A model generated the notes under the pieces. That model saw only the letters and a program-made list of their open reading frames with translations, did not search any database and was not told the DNA's origin. The position numbers were made by a program, and so were the translations under genes. 64,000 nt of DNA from Bispira polyomma (lineage: Eukaryota), in NCBI GenBank assembly GCA_965649765.1, contig OZ287757.1, positions 31,496,001-31,560,000 on the forward strand, in the 5' to 3' direction. Shown here one piece after another: positions 1 to 50,267 of the stretch (position 1 is its first letter; the number at the start of each line of letters is the position of its first letter).

Positions 1-2560
1 GGGGGGCCAAGATTTATGCTGACGTCTCCGCAGAGAGCGGTCAGCAGAGGGATCCAAATACTGTTAACCCTGGGGTTGGGACGGCGGGTAATGTGAATTT
101 GAAAGGCTAAAAAAGAAGTGTTCACCTTTTCCAGGGAGGCTAACAGAGATGGACCAAGTGCAAATTGGTCGAATAAAGGTGTATTTGATGGAGAGCAGGC
201 GCTCCATTTATGTAGTCTGACACCGGCCAGAATAATACACGGGAGAAGTGTTAAACAGAACTTCCACATCTCAGAGGTGAAGGAGCAGTAGAGGAAAAGG
301 AGTAGCAAGAAAAAGAACCAAATCTAAGACACAGATAGACAGTATCAAAATAAAAGATGTAACCTATTGAATGCAAAAACACTTGTAGTATAAAAATAAG
401 TGAGGAAAAGGAAATGCGAAAATCGCAGCAAAAAACGAATGCGTAAAACGGGGAATGCGAGCGATAATAGCAGAAAGTTAAACAGCTAGGTGGTAAATGG
501 CAAAAAAAATTCCTATAAAGGCAGACAAAGTAAATATAATAAAAGGAGCTGTAGTTAATCAAAATATGGTATGTTTTTCGCCATAACTCACAGGTACACA
601 CAACCCAAAGTGAAACTCTCAAGTCTTTTATAATCAAGACAGAGAGTAAGAAAAGTCAACATTGCATTCGCAAGTTTATATACAAGGAAAATGCATTTAA
701 CAAATTGGGAGATCTTAGAGGCGTTAATCGAACTGGAAAGCAATAATGGTTCAACCACATCTATATCGCATCTATATCACACTATTTTTTTTACTCATAC
801 TATGTATGAGACACTCTGCAACTAAACCTCAATAGGGGGTTGGCTACTTTCGCCCTCTCAATGTTTTTTCTTTTGTTGTTTATAATTGTGCAAAAAGGGT
901 AAATAAAATATTATTGAGAGAAAGAAATGTATTAAAGTGTTAAAATATCATGAGTTTGTAAAGGATATACCTAAATTCCATCTGTCAAATTATTTTTCTT
1001 TAAATGTAAAATAGCTTTAATGTACATAGGGGAGAAAGGATGGATTTATGTCCAGTAGGGTATGCATTAGGTAAAGGATTTAATGGAGCATAGTATAATG
1101 TAATAAAATATTTTAAACCTATAACACCTACAGCATAGAATAACGTTAATCATTAAAGCTGTCAAAAGTAAAAACTAAAAAGCAAATAAATGCAACAAAT
1201 AGCTGTTACATTATTGCTAGAGCTTATATTTCCAGCACTGATCTGTCTGGGTATAACTCTTCCCTCAGTAAAAGCAAGTGGGGAATAAAAATGCCATGTA
1301 ACAGTGATATATGAACTAAATAGACCATTGTGTCCTTGTAAAACCTAGCAGAGGATATAATATTACTGTAAGGTTTGGTCTCTGGGAGTCTTGTGATACA
1401 GATAATTGTGACATGGCAATGATTCAGACATAAAAGGAAATGTATCATATTCACCATTGGTTTAAATTGATGGATTTTTATTACGAATTGTGTTACTGTT
1501 GTTAATGTTTAACAATGGGGATTTTTATATTTAATATAAATAGCCACAATTTTGCTCTGCTTTAAATGTAACTGAAATATGTTATTTTATTAAAACGAGA
1601 TTCTGAAAAGATGTAACACTGAGGTTATTTAAGTTGGATGTTTTTTATCAGTTACATCATTTATTGACATTTATTGACAGCTTAACATGCAGTGATTCCT
1701 TGATATGCTATTATTTTATAAAAACTATTTGATGTCATATTATAGCATCTTAAGTAACATTCACAATATGTTTTTACAACAGATCTGAAAGTATTTTTAA
1801 ACAATATTTATTGTATTTTTACTCTTGTATAGTCCAATATATTATATTGATTACCTTCATTTCCTTAGATTTCTGTACAAAAAAGTATGAGAAATGAAAT
1901 ATTATTTTTGTTTTATATATACATATATTGTTATGCTAAATGAATCATTAAATCTGTATATCTCTGTAATTCTGTGTTTTGATTTCTACAAGAAATATCC
2001 AAACATAATTTTATCACTATGAAATCATATCTTGATATTTAAAAATGGTTTATTAAGTTCCTGAACATATTCCATACTTTTTTAACCTCACTACAACAAT
2101 AATAGAAATCTTCAATGGTGTCTAGCATATTGCAATATGAGCACATAATGATGACTGTAATATGTTATTAATATTATACATTGGTGGCGAATTTAGCGAT
2201 CCTATTGGTTAAAATGCGATTATGTGACATAACATGAAACCTGATATGGCACTCTGAAAATTTGATATGGCCCTTGCTTCAGTATAATAAACACACATAA
2301 GCCTGACGACCATCAAGCCATATTGGCCTGACCTCGGGTGCATATATCCCAGTATGGCCCTCACAAACAGCTCTTATTCTAATATTATTCTTTGCTGGCG
2401 ATATGTCTCTCTCCCACACAATGTTGGCACACTAATTTCTATTCGAATCATCCTTGGCTGGACAAGTAACAGTTGTCAGGAAAATATTGTGGTTAGTTTA
2501 AATTCAGTTGGGTTACACCATTAGGCCCTATCAAGGCGGTTACATTCTCATGGTACTACT

Positions 2561-2780
2561 CAAAAGTCAGTTAAACAGTTTGGTTATATCATTGTTTTTG
2601 ATGCTCCCATTGTTTGGAATGCTTTTCCTGATGTGATTCGTGCATCCCCATCTCTAGCCTCTTTTAGAAAGCAGCTTAAAACACACCTGTACACCAAGAC
2701 ATACCCACATTAGTATTAATCATCCCCTGGCGTTCTCTGTGGTGCTTGACTTTGGTTCTGTCTCTGGATATTGAAATTAG
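2561..2780 (+). mobile_element. 3' end remnant of an L2/CR1-group LINE
   Basis: 2561-2713 translates to ...FDAPIVWNAFPDVIRASPSLASFRKQLKTHLYTKTYPH*, the typical C-terminal APxxWNxLP..IR...S...F...LKTHL motif of CR1/L2-group ORF2. The 3' boundary is approximate. Confidence 0.75.
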
Positions 2781-3604
2781 AACACTAGCCCCGGAAATAC
2801 CGTACTACCCTGAGCGGTAAATTTAACTGAAAGCTTCTCTGAATAAGAAGCTGTTGAAAGTGACGTAAAACTAAACTAAATTCAAATTCCTATTTTTGTC
2901 TTCTTAACTCGATCCTATGTCTGTAAAATAAATTCTTGTTGTTGATAATTTCTAACAAAAAAATGTACAGCCCATTGTACAATTGTGGGCCTATTTAAAC
3001 AAGGTAGATATAACAGGTACACAGGAAAAATGTCTCTTATACAGTTTCGGGCGCAGTGTTAAGGCATTGCCCTTGTCAGTCCTACACAACCTTAAATTCT
3101 CTGAGGGTATCAGACTAATACACAGGTAAAATGGTTAAAAGGTAAACATGTAAACATAACCCCCATGTTGCTAAGTAAAATGCTAAACAATGATTCTTTT
3201 GGGCTGTAGCCATAAACAGCAGGGTCTTTAAGTCAATAACAAGTCAGTTTGAATATAGCCACAGACAAGTGTGGCAGGAAATCAGAATTCTTTCTTTTAC
3301 ATTGTTTTTTTTTTTTTACAAACGGTTTTACATTATGCTTATATGTTTTTACAAGTATACGTTTTACAAAGACTTATTTTAGTGTTTGTGTGTGGAATTG
3401 ACAATTTCTCTTCGATAGTGCTACAGATTGCTCCTCCTGACAACCTCATGCTTGGTTTGACCTTTTTAGGTCGGGATTAAGGGATGGTCTAACCTAACTT
3501 ATCATTCTTGCTTTAGTCAAAATTTTGCGGAGTTAAACCAAGCTGTGAGGCTGTGACCAGGAGCGCTGTGGGTCTGTGTACTTTATATTTTCAGAAACTG
3601 ATTT

Positions 3605-4790
3605 ATGAACAAAATATTAAAAGAAAACATGGCTAAACAATCAAAGGCGTTGTGTAAAAAGTGTGATGAGAGACATGTCCCACCTACAGGCAAGAAATGT
3701 AACAGAATAAATGAATTAACTGAGGCTTTCAATAGCAATGATCCGGATGTAGTGGAGGGCCATACAGTGTCGGACACGCAAGTCAGTACTGGGGCTGCAG
3801 TGCGCCGTGCAATGGGAGCCGCGTCGGCAGGCAGTGGAGAGAGGATCAGCAGGACAGTGTCCAGATGCAGATATTGAAGGAATTACAACGGGTGAATTCA
3901 CGACTGGACGTGGTAGAGGATCAGGTAACTGAATCCAGCGTCAGGCGACAGAAGGACTTGCTGAAAAGTGATGGACACAAGTTAAGTAAAAATTCCAAAT
4001 TAAGTAAAACTTTACAAAGTAGTGTTCAGTGTAATAAGCAGAATGTGAGTGATAGTACATCTGACAGTGAATCCTCAGATGAGGAGCAAGTCCTGCTCAG
4101 TTTGTCTGCCCTAAGAAGCTCTGCTTCTTTCCAATGCTGAGTTGACTCTAGGTTAAGGGAACTGGAAAGAGACAGCAGAAATACAGGTAGTGAAAGCTCA
4201 AATAAAATTAAGTCAAAAAGGGGAGGTGCAGTAGAAGTTAAAGTAAAGCAAAAAATAGCTTGGCCTCAAGAATCCATATTAGGAGGGGTTACTAGAAACA
4301 GGTTATCTTACGATCAGTTGTCCATGTCACAATGGGTGCAAGGGTTTTGTAAAAACATAAGTGAGGAACCGGACAGAAATAAAAAAGATAAAATGGTTTC
4401 ATACATGTCTGATCTGATGGAGGATGCTACTGATTTTATGTGGCAGGGGGCTAAGGCGGCACACGCAGTGCTCTTGTGCGAGATGGAGCGAGGCTCGCTC
4501 ACTTGGGACGATACAAATAGGATAGATCGGATCTGTAGGGCACATGCACAAAAGCACACAAATAATAGCAACTTTACTGGGAAAAATTGGGGTGGAAAAT
4601 CAGAGAGCAATAAGAAACCGTGGTTTTGTAAATTTTATCAAACAGGTACCTGCCAACAAAGAAAAGACCACGAAATCGGTGGCAAACTCCACAGATATAT
4701 TTGCTCACATTGTATAGCTACTGGTCGTGTCTTGGCTCATCCTGAAAAGGACTGCCTCCTTGCCAAGAAAAACCTAGGGCAAGCAAAACG
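3605..4790 (+). pseudogene. E1 gag-like ORF (frameshift near 3865, stop at 4138-4140)
   Basis: N-terminal CKKCDERHVPPTGKKC knuckle, coiled coil MQILKELQRVNSRLD, WQGAKAAHAVLL block and C-terminal Cys/His fingers; collinear with E4 gag. Confidence 0.88.
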
Positions 4791-7232
4791 AGTAAGTAGC
4801 TGTCCTCTAAGTCCTAAACTGGAGGGCAGCTGGGTTAGTACCAAAGCCAGTCAGTTACAGACGGTAGAAAGTAGAGAAGTTGTCAATGGTTTTAGTGTTA
4901 AAGAAAAAACAGATGGTGTTAGTGTTGATAATACCGAATGTGTAAATGTAATTGATAGAAATGTCAATCAAAAGCAGGCAGAGGACTCTGCCTATTTTAA
5001 ACGTATACAGCATGTGACAAAACATGCTGAGAGATGTTTTTATAACAAAAAAGTTAGAAAAAGTGATGTTGAGAGTTTGTTAGTTCGCCCATTACAAAGT
5101 ATTATGTGCACATTTAGGGCGGTGAATTGTAATGTCAAAAATAGGTCTTATGCTAGCGTAGTTAAGGCTAGGCAGATACAGATGGACACACAATGTCGAA
5201 CTAAAAAACACGAAATCCAGTCGCAGCGTGTCAAAGAACTCAACGCGAAGTGTGCCAAAGTGGGTAGTGGCGTTAAAACAAAAAATTTACAGGAGAGAAT
5301 CGATAATGTAAATCAAAAGGATGAAGTTTCCCCCCAAAAAAGTGAACAAAGTGACGCATGAGAATAATAACTCGGCGGAAACAATGAAACTATTGTTTGA
5401 TGTAAACGGCATGCAGGACGACATATTCATTAACTCCATATTGTTTCCTGACAATGGGCGTAAGTCAAAGCAAGTGGTGGGGGATTGTGACAACTTCACA
5501 AAGCAAAGCTTACAAAGCAATCAGAGTTTCAATTTGGATTTATTCCAATTACTGAACAAACACTACCAAGTAACATTGGCATTACAAAAACAAACATTCA
5601 ATGTCCAATTCAGTTACACAATGAAGTCAAAAAAGGGGGTCAGCCAAATTTCTTGGGGGCTTGAATACCAGTGGCATCTCAATTACACACACAACAATGG
5701 AAGGCCATGTTAAGTGATTATTGGGATCAGCAATTGCCTCAACTTATTGAGTTTGGGTTCCCTTTGGGTTTCAATCGCAAATGTGAACTCAGGTGTGATG
5801 TGGACAATCACAAGTCTGCAGTGGAATATCCAAATTATGTTGAAGTTTACTTAAGTGAGGAAAAAAGCCACGGGGCGATAATAGGGCCGTTTAAGCAAAA
5901 CCCAATTAAAAAAGGTCATCATTCCCCGTTCATGACTAGACATAAACCCAATTCAGACAACAGTGTTATAATACACTTGAGTTGGCCCAAAGGTTATTCA
6001 GTTAATGCAGGGGTAGAAAAAGACAGCTATTTAGGAGCAGATTTTAAGCTCAGCTTCCCCACGATTGATGATCTGACTAGGGAATTAACCAAGCTAGGAA
6101 AAGGCGCTCATATCTATAAGTTGGACGTGAGTCAGGCTTTCCGTCATATGAAAATTGATCCAATAGATTATGACCTGTTAGGACTCAATTGGAAAGGTAC
6201 TTCTATAGATACGTGCCTCCCCTTTGGGAGTTGGCACGGAAGCCTATTTTTCCAACGCGTTAGTGACGCTGTACGTTACGTCATGCGTCAGTGTGGCTAC
6301 AGCATTATTAACTATATCAATGATTTTTTAGGGTACGGCACACCCACGGTAGCAAAACGTTCATTTCAGTGTTTGTACAAAACTATGAAAATATTAGGTC
6401 TCACTATTAGTCAGAAAAAATTGGTGGCTCCTAGCACACAAGCAGTGTGTCTAGGAGTCCTTATTGACACAGTGCAAGGCACAGTTGCCATACCAGAAGA
6501 AAAGCTACCACAAATTCGTGTGACGGTTAGCCAATGGCAAATAAAACTCAATGTACCAAAAAACAATTGCAATCATTGTTAGGCCATTTGCTATACATTC
6601 ACAAGTGCGTTAAGTCTGCAAGATGTTTTCTAAATAGAATGTTGGAACTACTAAGAGGCATCTCAAATCCAAACAGAGTAGTCATAACAGAAGATTTCAG
6701 ACGTGACCTCAGGTGGTTTGACAGATTTTTACCTCTGTATAATGGTGTGTCCATGTATGGGCATAAGATTATTGACCAAACCCTAGAATTAGACGCTTGC
6801 TTGTATGGCTTAGGTGGTAGATGGAGAAATCTAGTTTACCATCTTCCAATTCCACTCAATTTTCAAAGTCTTGGCATAGTCCACTTGGAGATGATTAATA
6901 TTGTAGTAGCCTTAAAGCTATACCAAAGTTATTGGACAGGTAACAAGGTACTCATTAAATGTGACAACAAAGCAGTTGTGAATGTGTTGCAATCTGGTAG
7001 GGCTAGAGACCCTTATTTATCAGCATGCGCCAGAAATATATGGTATATGGCTGCAGTTGCAGACATTGAAATTCAGTATAGACATGTTATGGGTAAAGAT
7101 AACAGAATAGCTGATCTATTGTCCAGATGGAAAAATTCAAGTAATAATGTCCAAGAATTGAACACATTAGTGGAAAATCCAGTATGGTTGAAAACGTCCT
7201 TAGAATTGACTTATATTGATGATACATTGTAA
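4790..7232 (+). pseudogene. E1 pol (linker + RT + RNase H), frameshifted
   Basis: ORF pieces 4318-5361, 5321-5713, 5671-6582 and 6534-7232. RT motifs KLDVSQAF and LPFG; catalytic YIDD mutated to YIND. RNase H motifs DAC / LEM / CDN / NRIADLLSR. Confidence 0.92.
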
Positions 7233-7244
7233 ATAACAGATACT

Positions 7245-8237
7245 ATGCTTTGTGTTGTAGAGCCTGGAGCAGTGCAGGTGTTACAGAGAAAAGCTCACAT
7301 GAGGCTACATACTGCATTCAGACCAAAGACCAGGCGTTGCTACCAAAGCTTATTCAGAACTTTTGTGGCTTTTTGCCTTTGTGTAAATATAGCACTTGAA
7401 TCTATTAATGTAAATGGCATCATGTCTTTTCTGGAATATTTGGTAGTAAATAAAGTATCAGTGCATATGGTAGCAAATTATGTGGCAGCTATAAAGCTAT
7501 GTGTATTGTGCATGACCTCAGGTTCCAATTATTTGACCACCCGAAAATGAAATACTTTATTAAGTCGTTAAAAATTAATAGAGGTCACACCATAGTCAAG
7601 AGGAATATAATGGATGTGGATACTTTGAAGAGATTAGTAGTGCAGTGTGCACATATCAGTAATGCGCATGTATACAAAGCCATCTTTTTGACAGGATTCT
7701 TTGGGTTCTTGAGATTGTCAAATATTGCACCTCATGCTGTAAGAGAATTTGATTTAACAAGACACTTAACTGGGGCAGATGTGTTCTTCGAAAAGCACAC
7801 AGTAAAGATGCTTTTAAAGTGGACGAAAACTATGCAAAATAGGAATAAAGTACAAATTTTAACATTACCTAGGCTAGGCTCTGGTTCCATATGTCCATAT
7901 GCAGCCTTAAAACGATTGTTTCAACTTTATAATCCTGGCGAGAAAGACCCTTTGTTTCAGTGCAAAACGACAAAGGGCTGGCAGGTGGTTACAGATTCAA
8001 GAGTAAGAAAAACTTTGGCATTACTTAATACAAAATTGGGGTATCCAGCAAATTACTGCACATTCCATGCATTCCGACGCTCAGGTGCCAACGTTAGCTT
8101 ATAAAGCTCATGTTCCTATACAGCAAATTAAAGAGCATGGCACCTGGACGTTGGACTGCGTATGGACTTATATTCAGTCCAATACTGGTTCCACAGAGGT
8201 GGCTTCCACTTTCCAGCGCCTGCTAAATGTCGTATAA
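7245..8237 (+). pseudogene. E1 tyrosine recombinase (frameshifts near 7500 and 8090)
   Basis: FLRLSN (catalytic R) and HAFRRSG; in the shifted frame HGTW...VWTYI, stop at 8235-8237. Confidence 0.92.
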
Positions 8238-8306
8238 ATGTACATACCCCTAAGGTTGGGTTTGAGGCTTTTATTTTATGTACTTCAAAATAAACTCATG
8301 TGCAAG

Positions 8307-8542
8307 TTTAGGTCAACTTGAATATTTGCTTCAGAATTACCAAGGCCCCTAAGATTAGGGTCACCTAAAACTCTTAAGTTAAGTTCACCTTAGTGGCCCT
8401 CAGGTTAGGGCAACCTTAAATTACCAGTTAGGTGAAATCTTAAACTCAGTTTAAGATCACCAGGAAACACAAACTTAAAATAATTCCCATACTGAACTTA
8501 AGTTAAAACTTAAACTCAAATGTTTGTTCAAGATGACCTTTA
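8307..8542. repeat. Array of degenerate TTAAGGTNACCTTAA palindromes in the E1 3' region
   Basis: Copies at about 8307, 8355, 8379, 8405, 8428, 8451, 8498 and 8528, separated by non-identical spacers. Confidence 0.75.
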
Positions 8543-9942
8543 CTTTAATTTTATACATTGTAATCAGTTAAGTAATATTGTGTAACATGTTAAAGAAATG
8601 TAAATAAAACGTAGTCTAGAAATTTATTTTATACAATTTTATATAATAAAATTATATACCCTCATTGAATTTATTATTGACTTGGGAGTGATGGGGACTG
8701 TTCCCCAATAATTGCAGTAGGTCTAAATGAGGGTTTGTTTTGCCCACAAAACAAGATCGAGCTTAGCTTCCATATAAAAGTCATTAAAATTAGATGAAAC
8801 ATGCATTTATTGCTTAATAACACGTCATTAAATGCCTATGACATATGACCATAATCACCATTATTAGTATCCTAGAGGCTACAAAAGTGACATGATTAAT
8901 AGACTTTTGTGTTTACACTTCTATGCCTGTTTTAGGTGTTTTTTTTAAAGTAGTATCATATGTAAAGAGTTACAAAATTTAAATTACATAAAATTATCAT
9001 AAGATGTTGTGGAATATTGTTGGAAGGACAAATAAATAGATGCTGTTCTTAGTATTCTTCATAGACAACTGCAATTTTGGCTTGCAATTTTTTTTTGCTT
9101 GCATCTGGAGATAGGATTTGAATTTACTTGGGTTTTACATCGCTCTTAACAGCTCAGATCATATTGCAACGGCCAAATGTAAGGGTGGAAGAAACTGGTG
9201 CTGAAGCACTGTAAACCTATGTTCTATGGCAAGTACCTGACAAACCCTTTATATTTCAAGTAGTTATTCGAGCTACCATGTTTTAGCCCTTACCTGAGCT
9301 TTTTGAAGACAAAATGTATAAACATGAAAAACCTTGGGTTACACAGTACTGTGGTAAGACTTTGGAGTGTAACACATTTAATATAACGGTTTAATATTAA
9401 TTAAGCTTTTATGTAATCAAAGCTGAATTTGGTGTGTCAATTTTGGTCCAAAAGATGCTGGAAGTAACTCTATTTACAACACAGACATATCTGAATCTTT
9501 CATCTACTCTGCATTAGATCAAGGAAATTGTTACACTCTCCAGTAATAAATAAGGAAATAAATAAACTAAAAAACTGCAGTTCATTGACTCATTTGACTT
9601 AACTTGCCTATATCTTGCCCATATTTAGATATATTTGGAACTTTAACTTCACCTTTAACCACTGTTTTCTATCAGGCATTGTCTTGGTTAAAGGAAGCAG
9701 AACACGGTAGTTAGCCCAGCTTTCTCCAACTCACCGGTCTCCAGCAATTCTAATAGTAACTTTTTCACACATACATGCCATGACTGAGATTTGAACCTGT
9801 GACTGCAGAGGTTGGAGGTGAATGTGTTACCTCTACACCTTAGAGACTCCCTATATCTATTGATTCAGGCATATGCAAAACAATAATATTTAGAATGTCC
9901 TCTCTTAAAAGTACTTATGAACTAAGTGAATTGATTTGGAGC

Positions 9943-12080: not shown

Positions 12081-12491
12081 ACACCTGCCTCCCACCTTTG
12101 CTTTCATCATGGATTCAAGCCCTGACATGTATTTTGGAAGGTTGGTAGTGGACTCTTGGTAGTGGAGACTGTTTGCAGTCACATTGCTGCTTAAGTACTG
12201 CTAAGTATACACATTTTAGTTAATTTAGACCAAAAATTGGGATTTCTACGACTGTTTTAGACAGTTCACCTGTGGCTAAGGCGCCTGCAGTGGCATATGT
12301 CCTCAAGTTTTTTTACTAGTGATTCAGAGAGTTTTTAGGATAATCTCGGGTTATCTTTGATTTAATAACCTGGCTGTTATGTGGGCTGAATCTTGTATGT
12401 GTGACCTAGCTTTTAGCAGTGTACTATCAAGACCCCTTCATCATTATATGAGGCCAACTCAATTTTAGGCATGCTTACTTAATGCTCTACT

Positions 12492-12748
12492 GGGGCCGCG
12501 GTGGCCTAGTGGTTAGCAAGCATTGCGCTTCACAATCACTGGTCTCTCACCTCTGGGTGGCATAAGTTCGAATCCCGTCGATGCCTATGTGGGAAAGGTG
12601 GTAGTTCCTTACTGTGGGCCGCTGTTTTCTCTGCAGAACCTTGACCGACTGTATGCAGTGTTTCCTCCAGCGTTTCCAACTGCCCGTCCCAATAGAACCT
12701 ACTAAAAGGTACTAGAGTGGACGTTAAATATCCAAATTCAAATTCAAC
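12492..12748 (+). mobile_element. tRNA-derived SINE, family 1 copy a
   Basis: A box TGGCCTAGTGG, B box GTTCGAATCC, (CAAATT)n tail; TSD CTTAATGCTCTACT at 12478 and 12749. Confidence 0.93.
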
Positions 12749-14915
12749 CTTAATGCTCTACTGGTCACCATAATGTGCAAGCAGATGTCACTTTCCTCAC
12801 ATGGGCATACTCACAGATCATGGCTATACACATAAAACCAGAAAAGAACAAGGTTGCATGCAACCTTTATAGCTTGGCTAACCACCCCTGGCTCCCACTC
12901 TATATAATATTACCCAGACTTTTACTTGAAAACATGTGCTTACATGGACATATAAAATCCTCTTTGAGTCATTTGATCTGCATGGATGGGGCATAATACC
13001 TGGATCAAGCTTTTATTTATACTATTTAGCATTGTGATTTCTCCCCTGTAAGTTACTATTTTAAGCTATATATTATTCTGGTCTCATTTGCCTTGTTTGT
13101 GAATAGGAAATTGCATTTATCTGATTTCCAAATCACATTACCATTTATTTAAAAGTAAAATTAAGGATTCTGCTCTGCTTACAATGGTCTTTTAGTAGAC
13201 ATTCGGATTCTGCTTAAACAGCCAAATAAATATCAATCCCACTTTTCCTTAATGTGAAAACATATGACAGACAATTGCACTAGATAATAAGTACATCTAA
13301 TAAGTACATCTAATTATTTGCCTAGAACAATACTTTTTCTTAAATCAGTTATGCTGGCTTTTTCTTTCGACATATACAGTTTGATCAAGTTGTTCATCTA
13401 GTTAAGGTGACCATAAATTAGGTGTCCTGACTCATTTACGCTTGAATCCTCTTGCTATGAATATAAGCATATAGTAGTTTAGAGATCTGCAGCATAATTT
13501 ACTCACCTTAAAAGTTTTGTGAAGCTTGCTGACACCTGGTGGTGCAGACAAACTTGACCAAACTAAGATAATTATGATATAATGTGTTCTTCTTTTAGGC
13601 GGCAATAAACTGAAAATTAATCTGAAGCCACTTGTGTCTCCAAGGTCACAGGCTAAGATGCTCTAAGAAACATTAACAAAAAAAGTATAAAGTATTTGAT
13701 CAAATTGCCTCCGCTTTTACATAACCTTAAGCATACTCCAACATAAAACAGCCCATCAACGTCTTTTGTCCAAGTAAAGTTCCTTCCCTTTAAAATCTAG
13801 CAAAAAAGAATTAAGAGAAAAATATTTGGAATTTACATCTGAAAAGACTGACACCAAGATCATATAAAGTTCCATTTGAACATGGATACATTAAAGCTAT
13901 TGGGGTAACCAAAGATGTATGAAGCAAGTGGGAACAACAATTGTGGTTTATGAGCAACACTATTCATGTTCCCCTTATCACACTCATAACTCACATAAGT
14001 CACAAAATGAGATACTCCGTTAGATTATGTCTTAATATCACGACAATAAATGACCATGACACATATGCTCTTTACTGAATTACTATTATGAGAAGCTACA
14101 AGTTGTAATAAATCATAGATTTTTTTGTTTGGAATTCTAGATACATTTGAAGTCTGATTCTTTGCAACTAATAATGAAGGAAAAAATTATTACTGAATAA
14201 ATATAACTGCAGTTCTTGCTTTAATTAAAATAATGACAGCTTGCCAAGGGTATTACCATCAATAATTATGTGGTGTTTGAGTTTAAGCTTGAGTTTAAGT
14301 TAAAGCATTTTGATACACAGAGGTTAAGTAGTATGTATGTGACAAAAAAGGTAGCATGGAACAGGGTGGTTATTAGGATGGTCACCAAATCCTGGATGAA
14401 GTTGTACATCAAATTTAGCTAATTATTTGCTGAGGCACCATAATCAACAGACATTCAAAAAAGGTAAAGAAATGGACTAAACTGATACAAAGATGATAAG
14501 CCTGGCTGATGATTAATTGGTAGCTGTGACCTTCCATGCCTAGACAGAATTAGCATCCTTTAAATCAAATCAAATTGTTACACCTCACTCTCATTTGTGC
14601 TAGAGTGTGGCTTTGCAAGTATCCCAATGAATCAACATTACTATGTACCATGGTCTATAGGGCAGGTATTCTTCCTACTAATGAAATGGCATCAAGTAAG
14701 TACAGATCTCACTTTGGGTAGGAATAATGACCAAACGAAGTTGGACCATCATAAATAAACCGTCTGACTAAGACAGCATTTTACTCAAAAAAGAAGGCTG
14801 TTAAAGAGTGTCATTAGTCTAGTTTATTGCATCATTGATAAGTTTCTTGGAAGAAGGTAACACAAAATGCATATGCTGCTTCAAAAATAATGCCACATAT
14901 CTGATTTCCTGTCAC

Positions 14916-15098
14916 TTCACCTAAGTGTGTGCCCAGCTTAAGGAAGTAACAAGGGGTGGTATTATAAATGTATATGGTGTAAAGATGTAGTAAAACTCTA
15001 GATTTGAGATTTTATTATTTACAAGTTAGGACATAGTATACATGTAAAGAAGGTTAAAATAGTAAATTTAAAATTTTGAAATAATTTTAAAACACCCA
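14916..15098 (-). repeat. E2 repeat B2 (copy of B1 at 16345-16498)
   Basis: Near-identical to 16345-16498, except that B1 lacks about 28 bp (~14930-14957). Confidence 0.92.
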
Positions 15099-15423
15099 TG
15101 GTTCATATAAACGTATTATCAATAACAGTATATACGTTCACAAATCAACACAAATAGGACTAGCCATAAAAGTTACAAATAAAAACAGCATAAAAGGTCA
15201 AAGCCTTTCACTGAAATAATATATTAGTCGTATAACTTCTATTTAGAGAACAGTACTAACCTGTGTACAAAGCACCAGGAATTTATCCATTATCATAACA
15301 TATTTCAGTTCACATAATAATCTTGTAAATATCTGTTCATCGTTTTAGACTACTTTTTAACACTGGAAACCCAGCCATGTACTTGGCCAGTATGCAAGTA
15401 TTAGCAGTATTTCAAGGTCAAGT

Positions 15424-15676
15424 GGGGGCCGCGGTGGCCTAGTGGTTAGTAAGCATTGCGCTTCACAATCACTGGTCTCTCACCTCTGGGCGGCGTGTGT
15501 TCGAATCCTGTCGATGCCTATGTGGGAAAGGTGCTAGTTTCTTGGGCCGCTGGTTTCAATGCAGAACCTTAACCGACTGTATGCAGTGTTTCCTCCAGTG
15601 TTTCCAACTACCCATTCCAATATAACCTACTAAAAGGCACTAGAGTGGACGTTAAATATCCAAATTCAAATTCAAA
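15424..15676 (+). mobile_element. tRNA-derived SINE, family 1 copy b (nested in E2)
   Basis: A and B boxes, (CAAATT)3 tail; TSD TTCAAGGTCAAGT at 15411 and 15677. Confidence 0.93.
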
Positions 15677-16115
15677 TTCAAGGTCAAGTACCCCTTAATT
15701 GGTCAAATGTTCAACATATTTTATGGGTTACTGTACAGGGGCAATCAAAAGCAGCTAGGTGGAGGAGGCCGGCCCTGCGGCACCAAATCGCCTAGCGGGG
15801 GGGGGGGGGGGGGGGGGTTCGTGATGTCCAGAGCTCTTATTCTACCCTGGCCTCCTAAACGTGAACTCAGGGAAGGTTTAGAGATCACGACCCCTCACAC
15901 AGACTCGGACTACTCCCCCCAGCGGCAAGTGGATGCGCCTGCCAGGAATTACCCACAAACCTTTAAATAGCAACTCTTAAGCATACTACATCCTGTTGGA
16001 CGTACTCGTATCGGATTTCAAATACATTTCCAGCAAGTTACATGAACGCACTCATGTCTATTTGTGGGTTATAACAATGCACTATTATATTGCTGTGGTA
16101 AGGGGAGGAAGTGGG

Positions 16116-16341
16116 ATAATTTTCCCTGGTGTTGCTTCTTCAGGGCCACGTTTTAAAATGAAGACTAGAAAAAGGTGGGAAAATGTATTGTTCTTCCACA
16201 CAAAGAGAATAGGTGTGTGTATGGCTGGATAGACAGAGTGAATAGTTAGTCGACTCGCCTCCAGGTATTAAGGTAGCTATAAATTTTATTATGTGTGGGG
16301 GTGAATTGAAGTAGCAGACCCCTTTATAGTCGTACTTGCTA
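16116..16341 (-). repeat. E2 repeat A2 (copy of A1 at 21560-21703)
   Basis: Near-identical to 21560-21703, except that A1 lacks about 80 bp lying between two TAGTCG copies. Confidence 0.92.
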
Positions 16342-16505
16342 CAGTTCACCTAAGTGTGGTATTTTAAATGTATATGGTATAAAGATGTAGTAAAACTCTA
16401 GATTTGAGATTTTATTATTTACAAGTTAGGACATAGTATACATGTAAAGAGGGTTAAAATAGTAAATTTAAAATTTTGAAATAATTTTAAAACACCCAAG
16501 CCAAA

Positions 16506-17432
16506 CTAGACAGAAGAAGGAATAGCAAAAGCAAAGGTGAGAGGGACTGTTGAAACTGCCTGTGATGTTTTCTGTAAGTATGTCCATACTGCTGATGATC
16601 TCCAAAGACCATGAGAAATGATGTTCTGCAGGTATACATTATTATTAAATGCAAAAGTTGTACCAGATCTTCTGAATGTATGGAAACTGTGAGATTTTTG
16701 TGGAATCCCAGAGTGTGTGAGTACTGAGGAGAGGGCAGAACGTATGTGTGTATCTATAATTGACCCATGTGGTGGAGAGCAGGCAGCAAACAGGGGAGAT
16801 GTATCTGGTATTGGTCTAGAATGTAATCGCTGTCGCAATGCCTTAACTGGGCATAATTCTTTGTTCTGTAGTTTTGGTATCTGTACAATGTGTACTTCCC
16901 CTCTTGTCTGTAAGTTTTTCACCCATTTTATTATTATGTGGAACCCTGGTGGGCCAAAAATTACATCTTTCCTTAGAGAGTGCTTAGTAGGATCAAACTG
17001 AGCCCTTGAATGTGGTGATATATTAGAAATTCAAAGAAAAGGAAAAAATAATAACAAAAATATAGCTCTGTATAGAATTGGATCAGAGAGGATTACACAT
17101 GATTTGGAAATGAGAAAAAGGTGGTGGTTTTCAAATATACCCCTGGGTTGTGGTCTAAATTGAGAGTTGTGTGTTAGACTTCTCAGAAACATGGCCACTG
17201 TATTGTTCTCGAAAATATTAAAGTCCCAGGAATATTTTTTAGCCATGAATTTTAGAGCCGACAGGTAATTATTGATTGCAGCAGGTGCAGTGCCATTCTG
17301 CACCAAGTATTCCATGAAAGCAATTACTATATGTGTATCTATAACATCCACACCAGCAAAGCAAGTAAATGCCATAAATGTCTTAAATTGACTGTTGTAA
17401 GTAGACAATGTCTTGTGTGGTTTCAGTAGAAC
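16506..17432 (-). pseudogene. E2 tyrosine recombinase (frameshifted)
   Basis: ORFs 17031-17408 and 16506-16922: LCPVKAL, HTFRRSG, HGLWRSSAVWTY. Confidence 0.9.
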
Positions 17433-17438
17433 CTGGAA

Positions 17439-20103
17439 TTATAAATGAATATCGAATTCAAAGAAATTCAGTGGGATTTGGTGCCACACGAAATTCTCTT
17501 GCATTAGTACTGTTTGTTCCTTAGTTGAAAATTGATCTGAATAAACTCTTGAAAGTGCATCTGCTACAGTGTTCTTTTTACCTTTTATGTGCTCTATTTC
17601 TAATCGTATGTCATATGTGGCTGATAACAGCCATATGTTTCTAAGGCATAGTGCCAAAAAATCGTCCCTAGTCTTATTGGAGCCAACCACTAGAACTACT
17701 GCCATGTTGTCACAGAAAAATCTTATTACATTGTCGAACCACTGCTTTCCCCATAACTTAAGTGCTAGTATAATATTTAACATTTCAATGTGTACAATAG
17801 ACACTTGATTATTGTACACATTGTGGAAAGGTGTTGCATAAATTTGATTATTGAAGCACCCTCCAAGACCTGTGAGGCATGCATCAATGTATACTATGTT
17901 ATTGCTGTCAATAATTGGAGAAATAAAGTTGATACCATTATAGTTCTTAAGAAATTTTATAAACCAGCTTATGTCTGCTCTCATTTTGTTTGTAATTTTA
18001 AATCTTTTGGCCTGTGCATTGGCCCGGAATACCATTAGGAGTCTATTAATAAAAGTTCTGGCTGGCTTGACACATTTATGGACATACAGTAATTTTCCTA
18101 AAATAGATTGAAATTTTCCTCTGGAAATCCATTGTTTTTCATAGACCTCCTTACACAATTGAAACATTTTTTCAATTTTTTCTTGGGTAATACTGATGGT
18201 TCCTGCCTGTATGTCTATATCTATCCCTAAACAGGTGACCTTAGTGTCAGTGACAGTTTATCTGGATTGGTGGGGAGGCCTAAAGAATCTACTAACTTCT
18301 GTAACTCATCAAATGCTCTATTTGCTGTGTTTTTGTTCGATATGCAGACGTAGTCATCGATGTAGCAGAACACAGCCGAACGCGACCGCTGGACCGCTGG
18401 ATCCACGTACTTGTCATCTTCAAAGCAGATCCCTAACTTAATTGCATCAACCGGGTCAACTCGTAAATTTCTGAATGCTCTGGCCACGTCCAGTTTCATG
18501 ATTCGTGCTTCCGGTGTAACTTGTATTTCTGCCACAATATCGTCTATCATTGCAAATTTTAAAACAAATTTTGTACCGTTGAATTCTTGCTTATCTACAT
18601 TGTCATTAAATACCCCTTGAGGGTATGATAGATTTAAAATTACGCGGCGTTTGTTTGTGTCCTTTGGGCGTGGGAATAGTGGGGAGCAGTGGGGAGCAGT
18701 GGTATAATTTACTTCCTATAGTCTTTACTGGGCACAACATGGCACCATGGGCACTTTCTTTCTCTAGATATTCCCCAACTGCCGTCATATAACTGGAGGG
18801 CAGAATAGTGGTTGTTTGCTTCTTGTATATTCAATTGATCAGGTTTGGTGAGAGATAAGGGGAAGCCGAATTTTAAATATTGAAATAATAATTTGTCTGT
18901 GTGATCTCTCAGGATTTTCTCCCAGTTGTCTAGATTTAAACCCGAAACCAGTGGTATTCTTGCCCCTCTTGGGAACCCCAGTTGAGTGAATAATATTTGC
19001 AATATCTAATAATTGTGGTATGCTTGATATAAGAATAGGCTCCCTATCTCGGCCTTGAAATGTAAAGCTTGTGTCTGATAATACAATGAAGCCCTTATCC
19101 TTATTAGGCACGTTAATGTCATAAAGCTTTTCCTTATTGGTAAGTTTCTTATCAGTGGAAAAATTTAGAAAATTGTCAAAGAGGTCGGACGACGCCATGA
19201 TTATCTTGTCCTGAACATCCTTGTTCACATTATGTACTTTATTCACATTACATACATTATTAAATGTATTAATACTATTTTTCTGCAAGTCAGCTTCATT
19301 CACTTCTAAAATATCGTCTATAATTCCTGTGATGTGACTAGTATATGTATTATAGTTGTTTTAATACATTCAATATCTTTGTTGTAGTTGTCATATACCT
19401 GTTTGGGTGTTAAGTCACCCATATCTAAATGAGTATCATTCAAACTGTAATTGACATCATCTGTGAATTCAGTTAATGTCACTTCAGTCACTATAGTATA
19501 CAAAATGGCCAGTGGACTAGTTGGTAGCTGTTCACATTTAATGTAGTTGCATAGTTGCTGACTGACATTATATTGCTGGACAAAGAACCCTGCTATGTTT
19601 GGTTTCTGAACCTTAATATGTAAAACTGGTAGTGGGTAATCCCAATAATTGAACTTATGTGACCAATTTGTCACTTGTATGGTGGCATTAGCCATTATTG
19701 TGTTTGCAGGCTTGTTTAACCAGTTATTATCATTAATCTGGTTATCACATTTCCTGTTCTGGGGGAGTACATTATTGCTACCAACTGTTTGCAATGCATT
19801 TGTATACAATAGTATATTATTGCTCTCAAATAGTATTTGTTTTCCTTGCAATACTCTGGCTTTTGTTTTACATGCTTTGGTAACGTCCTGGAAGATTTCA
19901 GCTGTTGTACTACAGCTTGAACTAAGTTGTGACTTCTGTTCATTAACAGTTGCTAAACTGTCTTCTAGATTACATACAGCTTTACTGACCTTTTCAGTTT
20001 CTAATTTTCTCAACTTTACATCACTATCAAGTTTTTTAAAATTATTACTCGACTTAACCTTGGTTACATTTGTTCTATCACATCTGCTAGCTTTTAAATG
20101 CAT
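17439..20103 (-). pseudogene. E2 pol (long linker + RT + RNase H), fragmented
   Basis: LKFGFPL, KLDVARAFR and YIDD; the RNase H ORF 17439-18167 has DAC / IEM / CDN / ADALSR. Several frameshifts and an internal RT deletion. Confidence 0.88.
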
Positions 20104-20226
20104 ATTCTAATGGACACTAATTGAATCACGTCTATTAAAATTTAATATTACAGTACAATAAACCCTATTGTTATTACCCCCAATACACTTTCCAAAAGTT
20201 CGTTTCACTAGTAGTTGGCCAATCTC

Positions 20227-21443
20227 CTAACTGCTGTTATTCGCTTTAACCTCATGTTGTTTAGATGAATTCGACTGGTAGCACTTGAATTCTGGGTGCA
20301 CTACATCCTTATGAAGCAAAGTGGCACAGTGCCAGCAAATGTGCCTGTTTTGCCCGTGATCTGTCTTGTTGTTACATTTGCCTGTGTTGTAGAGCTTACG
20401 AATGGTCCTGGAAGAACTGGACGACTGATTGCTATGTGAGTTGTGCGAGCCGTGAGAGTGAGATGAATGTGCCATGGCCATCTGTGATGCGTTGAGGCAA
20501 TTCAACGCCCACTGGGTGTTGTCACTCCACTGAAGGCGACCCTCTTCTATCTTGTGTATATTATGCAACCACAAAGTACGAACCACTTACCACGGAAGTG
20601 AAGCAGCATCCCGAAGAGATAAAATGACTTGCTGACACATTGCTTTTGAAATGACCGGGTCTGTAACCTGCATGGCATTGGCCAATTGCCCCGCCGCCCA
20701 CTTGGGTAGTGAGAGCTCGTCAAACATGGGCCGTTTCCTGGATGTTCCCCCCACCCAACCTTCATTTGCCCACCTTAGTTTGGGGTCTGCATCAGGGTAC
20801 ATCTGTGCTATTAAAACGCCCAGACCTTTGACATGGGGTCGGCTTACCTTGGGCAAGTGTCTTCTGTGCTTGGATCTCGTACTCTGCCAGCCGTTTATTG
20901 ACTAGTGCTTGAACGTCGGGCAGTGACTTCAATACATCCACTGTAGGCACTCTAGCGTCGGCCGTGTAATTGGTGTGAGCAGGAGGAAGCGTTGGCTGTG
21001 ACGGTGCAGTTACTACAGGTAATGGGTTTGCTACAGGCAGGTTGGTCTGTGTGGTAGCAGCCAGCCAGGTAGTATTCTGGCCTACCCGTGTTTCCATCTG
21101 GTCTAGATGATTCGTGATTCGTTCGTTGGATTTTGCGAGTTTGTCCAGCATCACAAGCATTGAAGCCATAATCTGTCCATCCGAATTCGGCCCTATGGGG
21201 ACGTTATGGTGCTGCTGGAAGCTTTGTAAACGAGGATCTACTGTCATGGCTGTGTAACCATTGTTATTGTCAATGGGAATCTGAGCAGATAATACCTGGT
21301 TCAGAGGGGTCTGTATCTCCGTGGTGCAGTTGTCACTGGCGTCACTGTTCACTAATTTTCGTTGTGAAGTTTTAGCTTTGCTAGTACTTTTACTAGTCTC
21401 TTTTTTTCTTGTTTTCTGATGGTGTCTTTTTTGTTCTACCCAT
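20227..21443 (-). pseudogene. E2 gag-like ORF, fragmented
   Basis: Pieces 20792-21352, 20587-20856 and 20227-20586 with FDELSLPKW, IEEGRLQW and C-terminal HICWHC...HPEFKC. Likely start ATG at 21443. Confidence 0.75.
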
Positions 21444-21559
21444 CCTCAATACACTTATATACCTATCTCAAAATTAATAAACAAACAAAGTAAACTAAAA
21501 GACTAAAGCATAAAACCAATATATAATGTTCATGTAAAAATAAACGTGGATTTTCACAT

Positions 21560-21703
21560 ATAATTTTCCATGGTGTTGCTTCTTCAGGGCCACGTTTTAA
21601 AATGAAGACTAGAAAAAGGTGGGAAAATGTATTGTTCTTCCGCACAAAGAGAATGGGTGTGTATGGCTGGATAGACAGATTGAATAGTTAGTCGTGCTTG
21701 CTA
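21560..21703 (-). repeat. E2 repeat A1 (5' terminus, internally deleted)
   Basis: Matches 16116-16341; terminus TAGCAAGC on the minus strand is shared with E3. Confidence 0.9.
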
Positions 21704-26672: not shown

Positions 26673-26927
26673 GGGGGCTGTGGTGGCCTAGTGGTTAGCA
26701 AGCATTGCGCTTCACAATCACTAGTCTCTCATCTCTCGGATCGGCTGGCGTTGGATCGACTCCCGTCGATGCCTATGTTGGAAAGGTGGTAGCTCATTAC
26801 TGTGGGCTGCTGGTTTCAGTGCAGAACCTTGATCAACTGTATGCAATGTTATCTCCAGCATTTCCAACTACCCATCCCAATATAATCTAAAAAGGTACTG
26901 GAATTAACGTTAAATATCCCAATTCAT
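26673..26927 (+). mobile_element. tRNA-derived SINE, family 1 copy c (more diverged)
   Basis: Same body; TSD TTCTTTAGC(C/A)TGTT at 26659 and 26928. Confidence 0.9.
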
Positions 26928-28420: not shown

Positions 28421-30503
28421 ATTCAGAGCTATTTTATATTGATGTATTTTTGACATAACACCCACAGTGGCAACATAATATTAGAATAATCGATTTTAGT
28501 GTTGTGCATTAGTCATGCATAAGTCCTATGATGGCGATATTTGGCACTTTATGTATATTATATCAGAAGTTTTAAAGTTATATTTATAAACATTAATTGC
28601 ATTGCAATAGATCCAACTTAAATAACAGAGGAACATGTTTATTTGTTATACAAAAAAATACAATGAGAGATATAATGAGAGATTTGAGGCCGAGTTTTCA
28701 GAGTCAACTAAGAATCCTGAATGTAACTCGCTTGTGAAAGTGAGAAACCTGCTTTATTGGACTGTATATATTATTAATCAAATTTCAAACCCTAGGTTGT
28801 CCAATTACAGCTGACGGTATTTATTACTTCTGCAACCTATGTCTATTGGCAAGTAGTTGACACTCCTAAAATATTATTTTTCCTTCAGTTCCTCTCAGTA
28901 GGAAATTGTTATTTCAGCAAACTCCTTTGTCTACAAAATTAATATGTAAAGGGATCATTGAATGTTGGAAATAGTCTGTGGTGTGTATTTTCGTTGAATT
29001 CAACTATCTGTAACCTATTCTCTGAAAAATATCCTTCAGTTTGCGGTGATAGTTTTCTCTTGGGGTTAAAAGTGCGTAGAGTAAAAACACAAGGCACATA
29101 ATTTTTAAAAAGTCAATAAAAGATATAATACTGTGTTGTTCTAAAAATGTGTGCCAGTTCAATGTGAACCAGCCATCGTCAACAAAAGAAATTATCCTGT
29201 GCTGTTCCAGAAATGTCAGTTTTGTTAATCGTGAAGCAGTCTTAATATTTTGTATTTGTGTGCACTTATTGCCATAGGATTGCAATAATGATTGACTAAT
29301 TCATATCAAGTTTCTATCACCTCTAATTTGGTAAATGGTATGGCCCATATTTACCAATTTTAAAGATTACAACAATGATTGACCATATATAATAGGTTTC
29401 TATCATCAAAGATGGTAAGCCCAAGTTAGCCCAGTAATAACCACTTTTAAAAGTGAGCACTTTAATTAATTGAAAGAATGGTCTATTAGAACAACACTAG
29501 CTTTCTTAGAACCATATTTCATCTGGAGGGATGCTATGTTTGCAGTGTCTCGAGTACAGGAAATTGTAAGATATGTGTCTTTTTGACTTGTTGGCTCTGT
29601 GGTTTGCAAAATCGATTGTCAAAAATTATCAGTTCCCTATTGGAGGTGAAGTAGGAAATCAGCCTTATTGGAAATGGAGATGGAGAATGTGAAAATAAAA
29701 GATGCTGTTTGCGGTTTTATTTTTCTGTACATGTTAGTGGATATGTACAGATTCACATGAGAATATATTAAAATGTTATGGAATAAAAGTTTTAAAAATA
29801 AGCCCACGCAGGAGCATAACAAGCCCATGAATGCGGACATACAAAATAAAGCATAAGCACTACTATATAGTAAACCAATATATATGTGGGTAATCATGTT
29901 AAAGTAAAATTTTTAAAACAGTTACTAACACGACACCATGGTGGGACAAGCCCAATGCAATAATGACCTTCGAGCCATGCAAAAGAACATGTATAACCTT
30001 AAACCTGAAATTACTGTAGGTCATGTATACTTACTAAAATAGTTACTGATATTACACTGTTATGGGACTAGCCCAACAATTACACCATAATGACCTCGAA
30101 GTCATGAATTAAATTAGATGCAACCTTAGAATATGCCTTTGTGTGGGTATGCAGTTAACTTGCTGAAGTTGTAGCCTTACATTTGAGCAATGATCTGTAA
30201 AATACAAGTTTTATGTTCAATTGTGGGTTGTACCTAGCAGAGATAATTAGGGGCAAGGAGCCTTGGACACCCAGTCATCAAGTTTAGTAAGTATATGTCC
30301 ATGACTGTCCAGTATGGCCAAGTGATATTTGAAGTGATGTTTGTTATGCTGGCACAATGAAAGGAAGTGTGTAACACAGAAATAAAATATAGTAATAATA
30401 CTCGTTTGGTCATTTTTATTCTCATTGAACATATTAGTATGGTTAAAACATGAATATTCTACATTCTAAAACAGAGAAGAAAAAGGGCTAATGCCAAACC
30501 CAA

Positions 30504-31477
30504 TTATGTATTTTGTAGTTGTAGTTTGAAATTCATAGCCACTTTATGGGCGGCATTTGTGGATGTAAGGTATGAATATATGGCATCACTACGCCAATTT
30601 CCATGTATACGTATGTCTTGAAAAGCCACATTTGTGTTAAAAGAATATGTGGCGCCACTACGCCTGAAGCTATGAAATGTAAAGTGTGTGGGATCAAATC
30701 CTAAACTAGTAATAATTGATGCAAGTACTTGTCTAACTTTGGAAGCCAAAAGTGAAGAGTGGAAAGGAAAAGAAGGCAGAAGGAATACAGGGGGAGAAGG
30801 GGGAGCTGGAATAGCTTTAAACATAATTTTCAAGGCCTTAACAGGACACAAAATAGAGTTTTGTAAAGAAAGAATTTGGACTACTTGGAATTGGTCATAA
30901 GCCTGAAGGGTCTTAGACCACTTAATAGTAATAGTAGACCCCACTCGAGACCACTGAATATCCCCACGAGTAAGCCTCCTATCATTACACAACTCCCTGT
31001 GGGTATAAGGGACAAGATTTGAAATACAAAAGAACCCAAAGTAGGCCAACAAAAACAAAGCTTTGTAGACCACACCATTCCTCATAGAATCACATTTACA
31101 CACAATTTGTTTCAACATATCAATACCAATGACACCCTTAAACCTAGGAGCATACGGCAAATTATTTGTAACTGACTTCATGAACATTTTAACCTTGAGG
31201 TGATTCACCCCTGATAATGAAAGTCTATAAAACGTAAAATAATGTCTAATTACTGACAAATAGTTTGCCACAGTAGGTGGCTTCAAGTCATTCTGCACTA
31301 AAAACTCTAGAAAAATCATGACGTAAGCACACAAGGTGTAGTCGTGTATACCTATAAACATAGCCAATGCCAAAAATAACCTAAACTGTGCACTATATGC
31401 AGTCCTAGTTTTCTGTTTATAAGCCAACGGGACCCTCTGCAAAGCAGAGATTGCCAAAGCAGAGCCCAAGGGAGAAT
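30504..31477 (-). pseudogene. E3 tyrosine recombinase, open frame but catalytic Arg appears mutated to Cys
   Basis: 321-aa open frame without an N-terminal ATG. FFCISN where E1/E4 have FLR(I/L)SN; HSFRRSG; HGNWRSDAIYSY. Confidence 0.88.
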
Positions 31478-31483
31478 CTGAAA

Positions 31484-34799: not shown

Positions 34800-34972
34800 G
34801 ACCTAACTCGTTCCACCACTCTACTGGTCACAATTCTACCTGTACACCACAAGGCTTTACTGGAATGTCACACACACCACCCTGTACCAGATCACAACGT
34901 ATTCAATAGGTAACAACAAATTGCCACAACATACACTATCTCAGCGTTGGTCACACACGTTCACTATAGCCA

Positions 34973-35087
34973 ACACATGAAACTGCTTCCAGTTTCTATA
35001 CAAATGTTTGTCCCAGCTAATAACACATGAAACTGCTTCCAGTTTCTAAAACCAATGGTACACCCACACGAAACTGCTTCCAGTTTC
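34973..35087. repeat. Three copies of the hairpin GAAACTG-CTTC-CAGTTTC in the E3 5' leader
   Basis: Exact 18-mers at 34979, 35029 and 35070. Confidence 0.9.
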
Positions 35088-38000: not shown

Positions 38001-38518
38001 CCAAAACACTTAGAGTTATATAAGCACAGAACATAGACACGTATTTGAATAAGAATTAAAATAAATATTCAATAAACATTACAATACCTGCTGTGTTGTG
38101 ATCTCAGAACAGTTTATACAATGATGAACAGTAATTAAGCAAACACTAATTACCATTTTTTAAGATGCTACACCTACTGGGGACTAAAAGTATCTATAAT
38201 ATTAATAGGCAAGTCTGTTTAAGAGCTTGCAGGCTGCTATTTTTTGGTACTGTTGGAAATCTTGGAATTCCAAAGCGATTAATCCAGGGCGGTTTTAGTA
38301 AATTAAAATCATAGCTTCATAGCTTCATAGCTATTAAATTCATAGCTTCAAATATAAGCACTTTTCTTCTTTACAATTGCCATTTACGACTTTGACTATT
38401 GTTACTTGTCACTGCAACACCATTGTATAAGTCTTCAGTAAGCGATCTTTTACAAGTGAGCATTTCATCTAATAATGTGATCTACTGGCAATGACCATTT
38501 TTGGGGTTTACCAAGAAA

Positions 38519-50265: not shown

Positions 50266-50267
50266 AT

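Follow-up and report, generated by a model that had tools for sequence, protein, structure and literature searches.

A Covarying Stem-Loop at the Tail-to-Head Joint of Ngaro-type Elements Is a Candidate Attachment Site for Their Tyrosine Recombinase

Elements with a tyrosine recombinase gene in a 64,000-nucleotide stretch of Bispira polyomma DNA (the window, which contains no N runs) have ends that complement each other. As a rule, the last 6-20 nucleotides pair with a segment 25-36 nucleotides inside the 5' end, and a 7-9-bp hairpin lies between the two. Because the element's end (B) is complementary to a segment inside its beginning (A), one long imperfect stem-loop can form wherever tail meets head. 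We found this hairpin and covarying end complement in all 14 families analyzed, ten of which come from four other assemblies. That the stem-loop at the joint is the attachment site of the recombinase, probably read as a fold, with the internal B1-A2 junction acting also as a template that restores the ends, is a reading to which we give a little less than even weight. A sequence-only reading of the window had suggested either a folded recombination site or a splint that aligns the ends; it is partly supported, and both of its options are still live.

Results

Ngaro-type Architecture of the Elements

Judged from their architecture, the elements in the window are of the Ngaro type, DIRS order. 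E4 has a gag-like ORF, RT/RNase H, and a tyrosine recombinase in this order on one strand (Pfam: RVT_1, RVT_3, Phage_integrase). The recombinase catalytic set R162, K197/K200, H280, R283, W306, Y314 is invariant or nearly so in a 10-protein alignment, and the four recombinases of the window are mutually 35-51% identical. Split direct repeats in the order A1-[ORFs]-B1A2B2, the architecture described for Ngaro/PAT elements (PMC8547959, PMC4157794), are present in E2 within the window and in genomic copies of the E4, E1, and E3core families; the arrangement A1-I-B1-A2-x-B2 is also seen in the relatives L031, L032, L035, L037-L040, L043, and L044. [quoted passage not shown] A methyltransferase following RNase H, as in DIRS1-like or PAT-like elements, is absent from ORF2 of E4 (856 aa; the Pfam scan returned only RVT_1 and RVT_3, and the RNase H-like match stops at residue 823). 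The window copies E1, E4, and E3 contain no long terminal or split repeats, A2-x-B2 being missing there; E1, E4, and E3core in the window are single-unit copies of families that also have A-I-B-A-x-B copies. The features are as follows.

46059 to 51764, plus strand: E4, single-unit A-I-B copy (Pfam; ends read in 19 genomic copies; empty paralogous site at ~37218/37222)
46682 to 47797, plus strand: E4 gag ORF
47695 to 50265, plus strand: E4 RT/RNase H ORF (Pfam)
50268 to 51281, plus strand: E4 recombinase (YR) ORF (Pfam)
46059 to 46088, plus strand: E4 5' hairpin (termini from genomic copies)
46089 to ~46108, plus strand: E4 CAGTCC and C-rich arm (same source)
~51744 to 51764, plus strand: E4 G-rich 3' arm (same source)
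3047 to 8700, plus strand: E1, single-unit copy with broken ORFs; 5' hairpin 3047-3076, CAGTCC 3077-3082, GGACTG 8695-8700
30272 to 35730, minus strand: E3core, autonomous, nested in S3; 5' end 35730, CAGTCA 35704-35699, 3' end TGACTG 30277-30272
35731 to 36162, minus strand: S3 5' part (A), starting TGACTAGCAAG; CAGTTCC 36128-36122
29630 to 30271, minus strand: S3 3' part (B), ending GGGAACTG at 29630
14913 to 21703, minus strand: E2, decayed Ngaro-type element with split direct repeats and broken ORFs (repeat alignments; tblastn of YR 17429-16557)
21703 to ~21560, ~16498 to 16342, 16341 to ~16116, and ~15098 to 14913, minus strand: E2 parts A1, B1, A2, and B2, respectively (repeat alignments)
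16286 to 16365, minus strand: E2 internal B1-A2 junction, joint between 16342 and 16341 (sequence and A1/A2, B1/B2 alignments)

Ends and Forms of the Elements

A search of the genome with E4 returned at least 13 near-identical copies. The ends of the family do not vary among 19 copies, whose flanks are unrelated and show no duplication; they read TCACTCG at the 5' side (46059) and GGGGACTG at the 3' side (51764). The start had earlier been placed at 46056; the 19 copies together with four real tandem junctions move it to 46059. Genomic copies of E1 begin at query position 8, which corrects the start of that element to 3047, and its tandem copies join query 5661 to query 8, i.e. the last base to 3047. 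(Tandem junctions of E1, E3core, and S3 were taken from coordinate tables of genomic copies and from the window's own ends.) Precise empty sites were found for E4 and E3core, and the window's paralogous empty site agrees with the E4 ends. Insertion occurred without target-site duplication in 19 E4-family insertions, in E3core within S3, and in L039 within a satellite, the exception being a 105-bp duplication around S3 in the window. A host unit of ~7 kb, which provides the empty-site reference for E4 and S3, occurs three times in the window (36164-40500, 52500-57000, 59700-64000; 76-94% alike). Past the recombinase gene, the B region contains arrays of short palindromes (TTAAGGTCACC-like units), at 51420-51620 in E4 and at 8340-8520 in E1.

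The E3 of the sequence-only reading does not hold up as one element. Its ends belong to S3, a 1.07-kb non-autonomous element, and the recombinase-coding E3core is nested inside. S3 query positions 1-433 and 5893-6534 adjoin (433 next to 5893) in many genomic copies, from which it follows that the ends assigned to E3 are those of S3; the junction of the S3 end with A (AACTG joined to TGAC) is found at six genomic loci. E3core, query 434-5892, acts as one unit with its own A (434-852), its own B (5669-5892), and its own tandem forms. Its insertion into S3 is precise and without duplication, and many genomic S3 copies are empty at that point. Around the S3/E3core composite, ~105 bp of host sequence is doubled (29527-29629 and 36164-36266; 97% alike, one with a 26-bp gap), which differs from every other insertion examined, none of which was duplicated; paralogous empty copies of this host stretch at 54132-54234 and 61156-61258 are only ~83% alike.

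The E4 family comes in three forms: single A-I-B units of 5.7 kb (the window copy and seven others, near-identical, with exact ends at unrelated loci), tandem A1-I-B1-A2-x-B2 copies of 6.7 kb (L002, L003, L004, L008, and one decayed copy), and free A-x-B units of ~0.98 kb at five loci. Its spacer x is unique sequence, with a fold no more stable than that of shuffled versions (z +1.9). S3 and the A-x-B units, which are short and non-autonomous, share the same ends. A reversed order of A-I-B-A-x-B was never seen in tandem copies of the three families examined.

E2 provides a real 3'-to-5' junction, as had been noted from the sequence; it is, however, the known B1-A2 junction of Ngaro/PAT-type split repeats, as the A1/A2 and B1/B2 alignments demonstrate. 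Its fold comprises GGTGAA(cTG)/(CAa)TTCACC as the outer helix and TAGCA..TGCTA as the inner hairpin. E2 A1 (21682-21703) lacks 76 nucleotides that are present in A2 (16253-16341) between two CGACTA direct repeats; gone with them are the complementary segment and the hairpin's 3' half. The spacer x of E2 contains a nested SINE/MITE-like insert (15425-15675). This ~250-bp repeat is found in both orientations, 84-96% alike, also at 12488-12747, 26673-26889, 43876-44159, 45317-45600, and 52221-52504.

The stem-loop had been proposed to stand in place of long terminal repeats. E2 itself is organized as A1-I-B1-A2-x-B2, and the E4, E1, and E3core families have copies of this organization; the proposal therefore fails, and the stem-loop sits beside the repeats. 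In its strong form, it would have single units such as E4 replicating alone, with the miniature stem-loop instead of terminal repeats, and the eight near-identical single-unit E4-family copies with exact ends at unrelated loci are what this predicts. Against it, every family has tandem A-I-B-A-x-B copies, the complete loci retrieved from ERZ22147071, another assembly (L031, L032, L035, L037-L040), are all tandem, and single and A-x-B units are expected from recombination between B1 and B2 or A1 and A2; we consider the strong form very improbable. Solo AB repeats have been described in Cafeteria Ngaros (PMC8547959). More speculatively, single units and A-x-B circles could arise by site-specific deletion between the B1-A2 junction and the element end.

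End Complementarity across Families

All eight complementary segments on which the sequence-only reading was built are correct. They comprise CAGTCC 46089-46094 / GGACTG 51759-51764 in E4, CAGTCC 3077-3082 / GGACTG 8695-8700 in E1, TCAGTTCC 36129-36122 / GGAACTGA 29636-29629 in S3 (the former E3), and TCAATTCACC 16309-16300 / GGTGAACTG 16350-16342 in E2; the final A of GGAACTGA (29629) is flank and does not belong to S3. E3core, which had not been used in formulating the pattern, obeys the same rule: it ends TGACTG and has CAGTCA at +27. The outer helix is often far longer than 6-10 nucleotides and reaches ~20 bp.

We then asked for the same arrangement in recombinase homologues from public assemblies, using loci with clear A1-I-B1-A2-x-B2 organization. 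The check that had been called for, joining 3' to 5' ends of further families and folding them, returned both pairing and covariation, and every readable junction fits the rule. The 3' ends and their complements in A are listed below.

L031, L046: 3' end GCACTG, complement CAGTGC
L032, L035, L036, L038: 3' end GGACTG, complement CAGTCC, with G-rich/C-rich extensions to 14-20 bp
L042: 3' end GTGGACTA, complement TAGTCCAC
L043: 3' end CGTAATG, complement CATTGCG (one T.G)
L044: 3' end CAATTTAA, complement TTAAATTG

No recognizable repeats or junction were found in L034, L041, and L045. L032:3136-9127 (the same locus as L033) contains a 3-kb internal tandem duplication of part of the RT and recombinase gene, which gives two recombinase ORFs.

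The 14 families fall in at least seven clades with differing terminal sequences, and the terminal tetranucleotide covaries with its partner (ACTG/CAGT, ACTA/TAGT, AATG/CATT, TTAA/TTAA). Pairing within a family beats pairing between families of different clades. In alignment A4, which comprises seven families, 93% of the cells pair, compared with 37-48% when partners are slid; six pairs are altered on both sides, and the covariation score is 0.34 versus 0.18, a level that none of 500 shuffles attained. Seven of the 14 families have the GGGGACTG/CAGTCC core in common by descent, which counts against our preferred reading. At a random window position, a perfect complement of the preceding 6 nucleotides lies within +20 to +50 in 1.0% of cases, and of the preceding 8 nucleotides in 0.06%. 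Complementarity that arose by chance and has no function would be compatible with the weak folding scores of the E2 and L043 junctions taken individually (z -1.8 to -1.9), but is already contradicted by 14 of 14 families with the complement at a fixed position and with compensatory changes; we regard its probability as negligible. A polypurine-tract reading of the G-rich B end was rejected: it would suit one clade only, the ends of E3core, L042, and L044 not being purine-rich.

Fold Geometry and Strand Bias

The joint is always found at the inner end of the outer helix, and the first 1-5 nucleotides of A are unpaired. A 3-nucleotide bulge at a fixed place, inferred earlier from two of the elements, is not general; what recurs is 1-5 unpaired nucleotides directly 3' of the joint, the unpaired nucleotides at the joint ranging from 1x1 to 5x4. 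Within the GGGGACTG clade, the T at +1 lies opposite a T in five families (E4 by eye). Real junctions fold on the sense strand with z-scores of -1.8 to -5.8, the weakest being that of E2 (-1.84), a decayed copy.

The sense strand is more stable than the antisense strand in 12 of 13 families by our own script and at nine of ten real junctions by the folding tool, with a gap that is small under DNA energy parameters. By our count, the cells of alignment A4 hold 12 G.U and 2 A.C oppositions, and the inner stem retains G.T oppositions at the same or shifted positions. This wobble pattern favors a structure of the sense strand. The single-stranded cDNA of DIRS-1, the sole one known for the order, is antisense (PMC7192593), and the conserved wobbles on the sense strand therefore weaken the simplest version of a folded first-strand cDNA.

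The bias toward the sense strand fits a structured RNA no less well than folded DNA, which speaks against our preferred reading. The main rival, which strikes us as rather unlikely, is that the stem-loop matters at the RNA level only: it would form in read-through genomic RNA at B1-A2, or be split between the 5' hairpin with its C-rich arm and the G-rich 3' arm, and the recombinase would act on ordinary duplex. It could be a packaging or reverse-transcriptase recognition signal, or bring about a cyclization that guides template switching and restoration of the ends, i.e. the splint proposed before, now in RNA and in addition to the split repeats. The sense-strand wobbles and the more stable sense folds are in line with this, as are the loop motif (..AGG), which this genome's families and the L031-L038 families retain, and the essential role of the ICR in DIRS-1 (PMC7192593). 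So are L037 and L040, both of which begin at +6, just before the inner stem, and have the look of unrestored cDNA from a transcript without the loop nucleotides. An RNA role by itself, however, does not tell why the breakpoint of integration falls at the edge of the helix in each family, nor why targets imitate the arm of the outer helix. In addition, AATAAA-like signals precede the B end by ~45-60 nucleotides. Should the element use them, its transcript may, as we read it, stop short of the G-rich arm, which would block 5'-3' pairing.

L037 (3583, 10304) and L040 (3583, 10285) are independent copies within one family, short of a full B2 by 3 and 22 nucleotides, respectively, and their sisters L038 and L039 have full ends. 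Both may stem from cDNA that was inserted without being restored, and the point at which they begin may be that of the transcript. A self-cleaving ribozyme at the joint was considered and rejected, there being no Rfam match and the joint being unlike a hammerhead NUH site: Rfam covariance models gave no match in the window at gathering thresholds, and at E<=1 none in L002:6700-8300, which covers a real junction of the E4 family.

Integration Targets

For one family, E4, we reconstructed the targets of 19 insertions. They share G at -7 (13/19), A at -4 (11/19), T at -2 (12/19), T at -1 (14/19), and A at +1 (11/17), a consensus that agrees with the B end GGGGACTG at -7, -4, and -2. On these sequences, the targets imitate the 3' arm of the element. 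A trinucleotide shared by both ends, as in DIRS1-like elements, was rejected, since one of the 19 left flanks ends CTG and only one right flank starts TCA. A palindromic target was rejected as well: over 16 insertions, just positions +/-1 and +/-6 rise above control, and weakly so. The target of E4 in the window, ACTGTT/AACAGT (46050-46058 with 51765-51773), is a perfect 12-bp palindrome centered on the insertion point; other E4-family targets are weakly symmetric. The host flank left of A1 resembles the element's own B end in L032:566-574 (6/9) and L043:3369-3383 (10/15), which fits either target mimicry or insertion beside an old B end.

The terminal nucleotides are invariant and the targets share only few positions. 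This argues against a two-strand exchange over a 6-8-bp overlap, from which heteroduplex-derived variants would be expected; none were seen. The same argument bears on the possibility that the joint is an ordinary duplex site, in which inverted repeats bind recombinase subunits on a double-stranded circle and nothing folds. Core sites of tyrosine recombinases are inverted repeats, and where a protein binds a palindrome, both arms change in step. It is a double-stranded circle, too, that is integrated in the accepted DIRS/Ngaro model (PMC3266345, PMC7192593). The breakpoint, however, lies ~15 nucleotides off the dyad axis, which would place the symmetry-related cut ~30 bp away and not at 6-8 bp. 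Duplex binding also leaves the consistent asymmetry of G.T over A.C unexplained, and the 6-8 terminal nucleotides are invariant on both sides while targets share 3-4 positions only, against a two-strand exchange across a heterologous overlap. We consider a plain duplex site improbable.

Discussion

Proposed Role of the Joint

We read the joint as the place where the recombinase acts, probably on a folded substrate. The tail-to-head stem-loop can form in B1-A2, in a circle, or by pairing of the two ends of one strand. The recombinase would then recognize the arm of the outer helix and exchange a strand exactly at the 3' edge of this arm, the partner being a chromosomal site whose left half mimics the arm (G at -7, A at -4, T at -2). 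The partner strand of the arm is supplied in cis and covaries with it, so that the recombinase probably reads the site as a single sense strand folded back on itself or as an extruded hairpin, an argument that has been used for attC. Replication would then complete a single strand exchange, in the manner of integron attC and CTXphi attP. The internal B1-A2 copy may double as a template that restores ends absent from the transcript. Restoring missing transcript ends is the accepted role of the ICR or B1A2, and the ICR is essential in DIRS-1 (PMC7192593).

Further points count against this reading. The stems are irregular, their two tiers are short beside the two arms and spacer of a classical core site, and there is no fixed extrahelical base. 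Inverted repeats covary, too, where a dimeric protein binds duplex DNA. The unreversed A-I-B-A-x-B order is not easily explained by a circle with two equivalent junction sites. A wider scenario, drawn by analogy, is that Ngaro-type elements integrate via a folded single-stranded attachment site, with a single strand exchange at the helix edge that is resolved by replication, and that A-x-B units are cassette-like circles, excised and re-inserted between junction sites; in this full form it is doubtful.

Comparison with Known Systems

[quoted passage not shown] Like B1-A2 of Ngaro/PAT elements and the ICR of DIRS-1, the junction described here is an internal tail-to-head copy downstream of the recombinase gene, of the kind thought to template restoration of the transcript ends (PMC7192593). 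It differs in that a covarying stem-loop spans the joint, with the breakpoint fixed at the helix edge, whereas the papers just cited give Ngaro elements direct repeats only, and in that a unique spacer x of 45-786 nucleotides parts A2 and B2. In DIRS1-like elements, with their ITRs and 3-bp circular junction, the joined ends likewise make a palindrome, and integration takes place at the joint without target duplication into targets that have a few nucleotides of the joint (PMC3266345). NTT termini are common there (PMC3266345), and the left flanks of our elements end TT. The palindrome here, in contrast, is small (~50-80 nucleotides), with the joint off-center and a 5' extension hairpin of 26-34 nucleotides, and there are neither long ITRs nor a trinucleotide common to both ends.

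With integron attC sites, the joint has in common that structure is kept while sequence is free, and that an imperfect hairpin with unpaired bases is formed (here in silico only). The crossover likewise falls on one arm, where the basal helix ends; insertion into targets of minimal consensus is precise; and unit circles bounded by such sites (A-x-B) are conceivable. The differences are that core boxes (RYYYAAC / GTTRRRY) are missing, as are extrahelical bases at set positions, the cores being ACTG followed by T after the joint, opposite CAGT, or unrelated, and that the recombinase lineage is eukaryotic and distinct. At attP(+) of CTXphi, a forked single-stranded DNA hairpin mimics the duplex target of XerC/D, and a single strand pair takes part in the exchange, which replication resolves (PMC3442271); the likeness lies in the fold proposed here. 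CTXphi relies on host recombinases and the phage plus strand, whereas the enzyme here is the element's own.

Integration in the DIRS order has been argued from sequence since 1985, and to our knowledge the substrate of its recombinase has never been defined. What has been demonstrated for the order so far is limited to the requirement for the ICR and the occurrence of single-stranded cDNA (PMC7192593). A structure-conserved site with a fixed breakpoint is a concrete biochemical substrate, which predicts the point of cleavage and the compensatory mutations that would rescue it. The signature, a terminal complement at +25 to +36 with an inner hairpin, also helps to locate the exact ends of Ngaro-type elements and of their short non-autonomous derivatives. 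Should the fold indeed be the substrate, site-specific recombination of single strands would occur in animals as well as in bacteria, and the mechanism of integrons and CTXphi would have been reinvented there.
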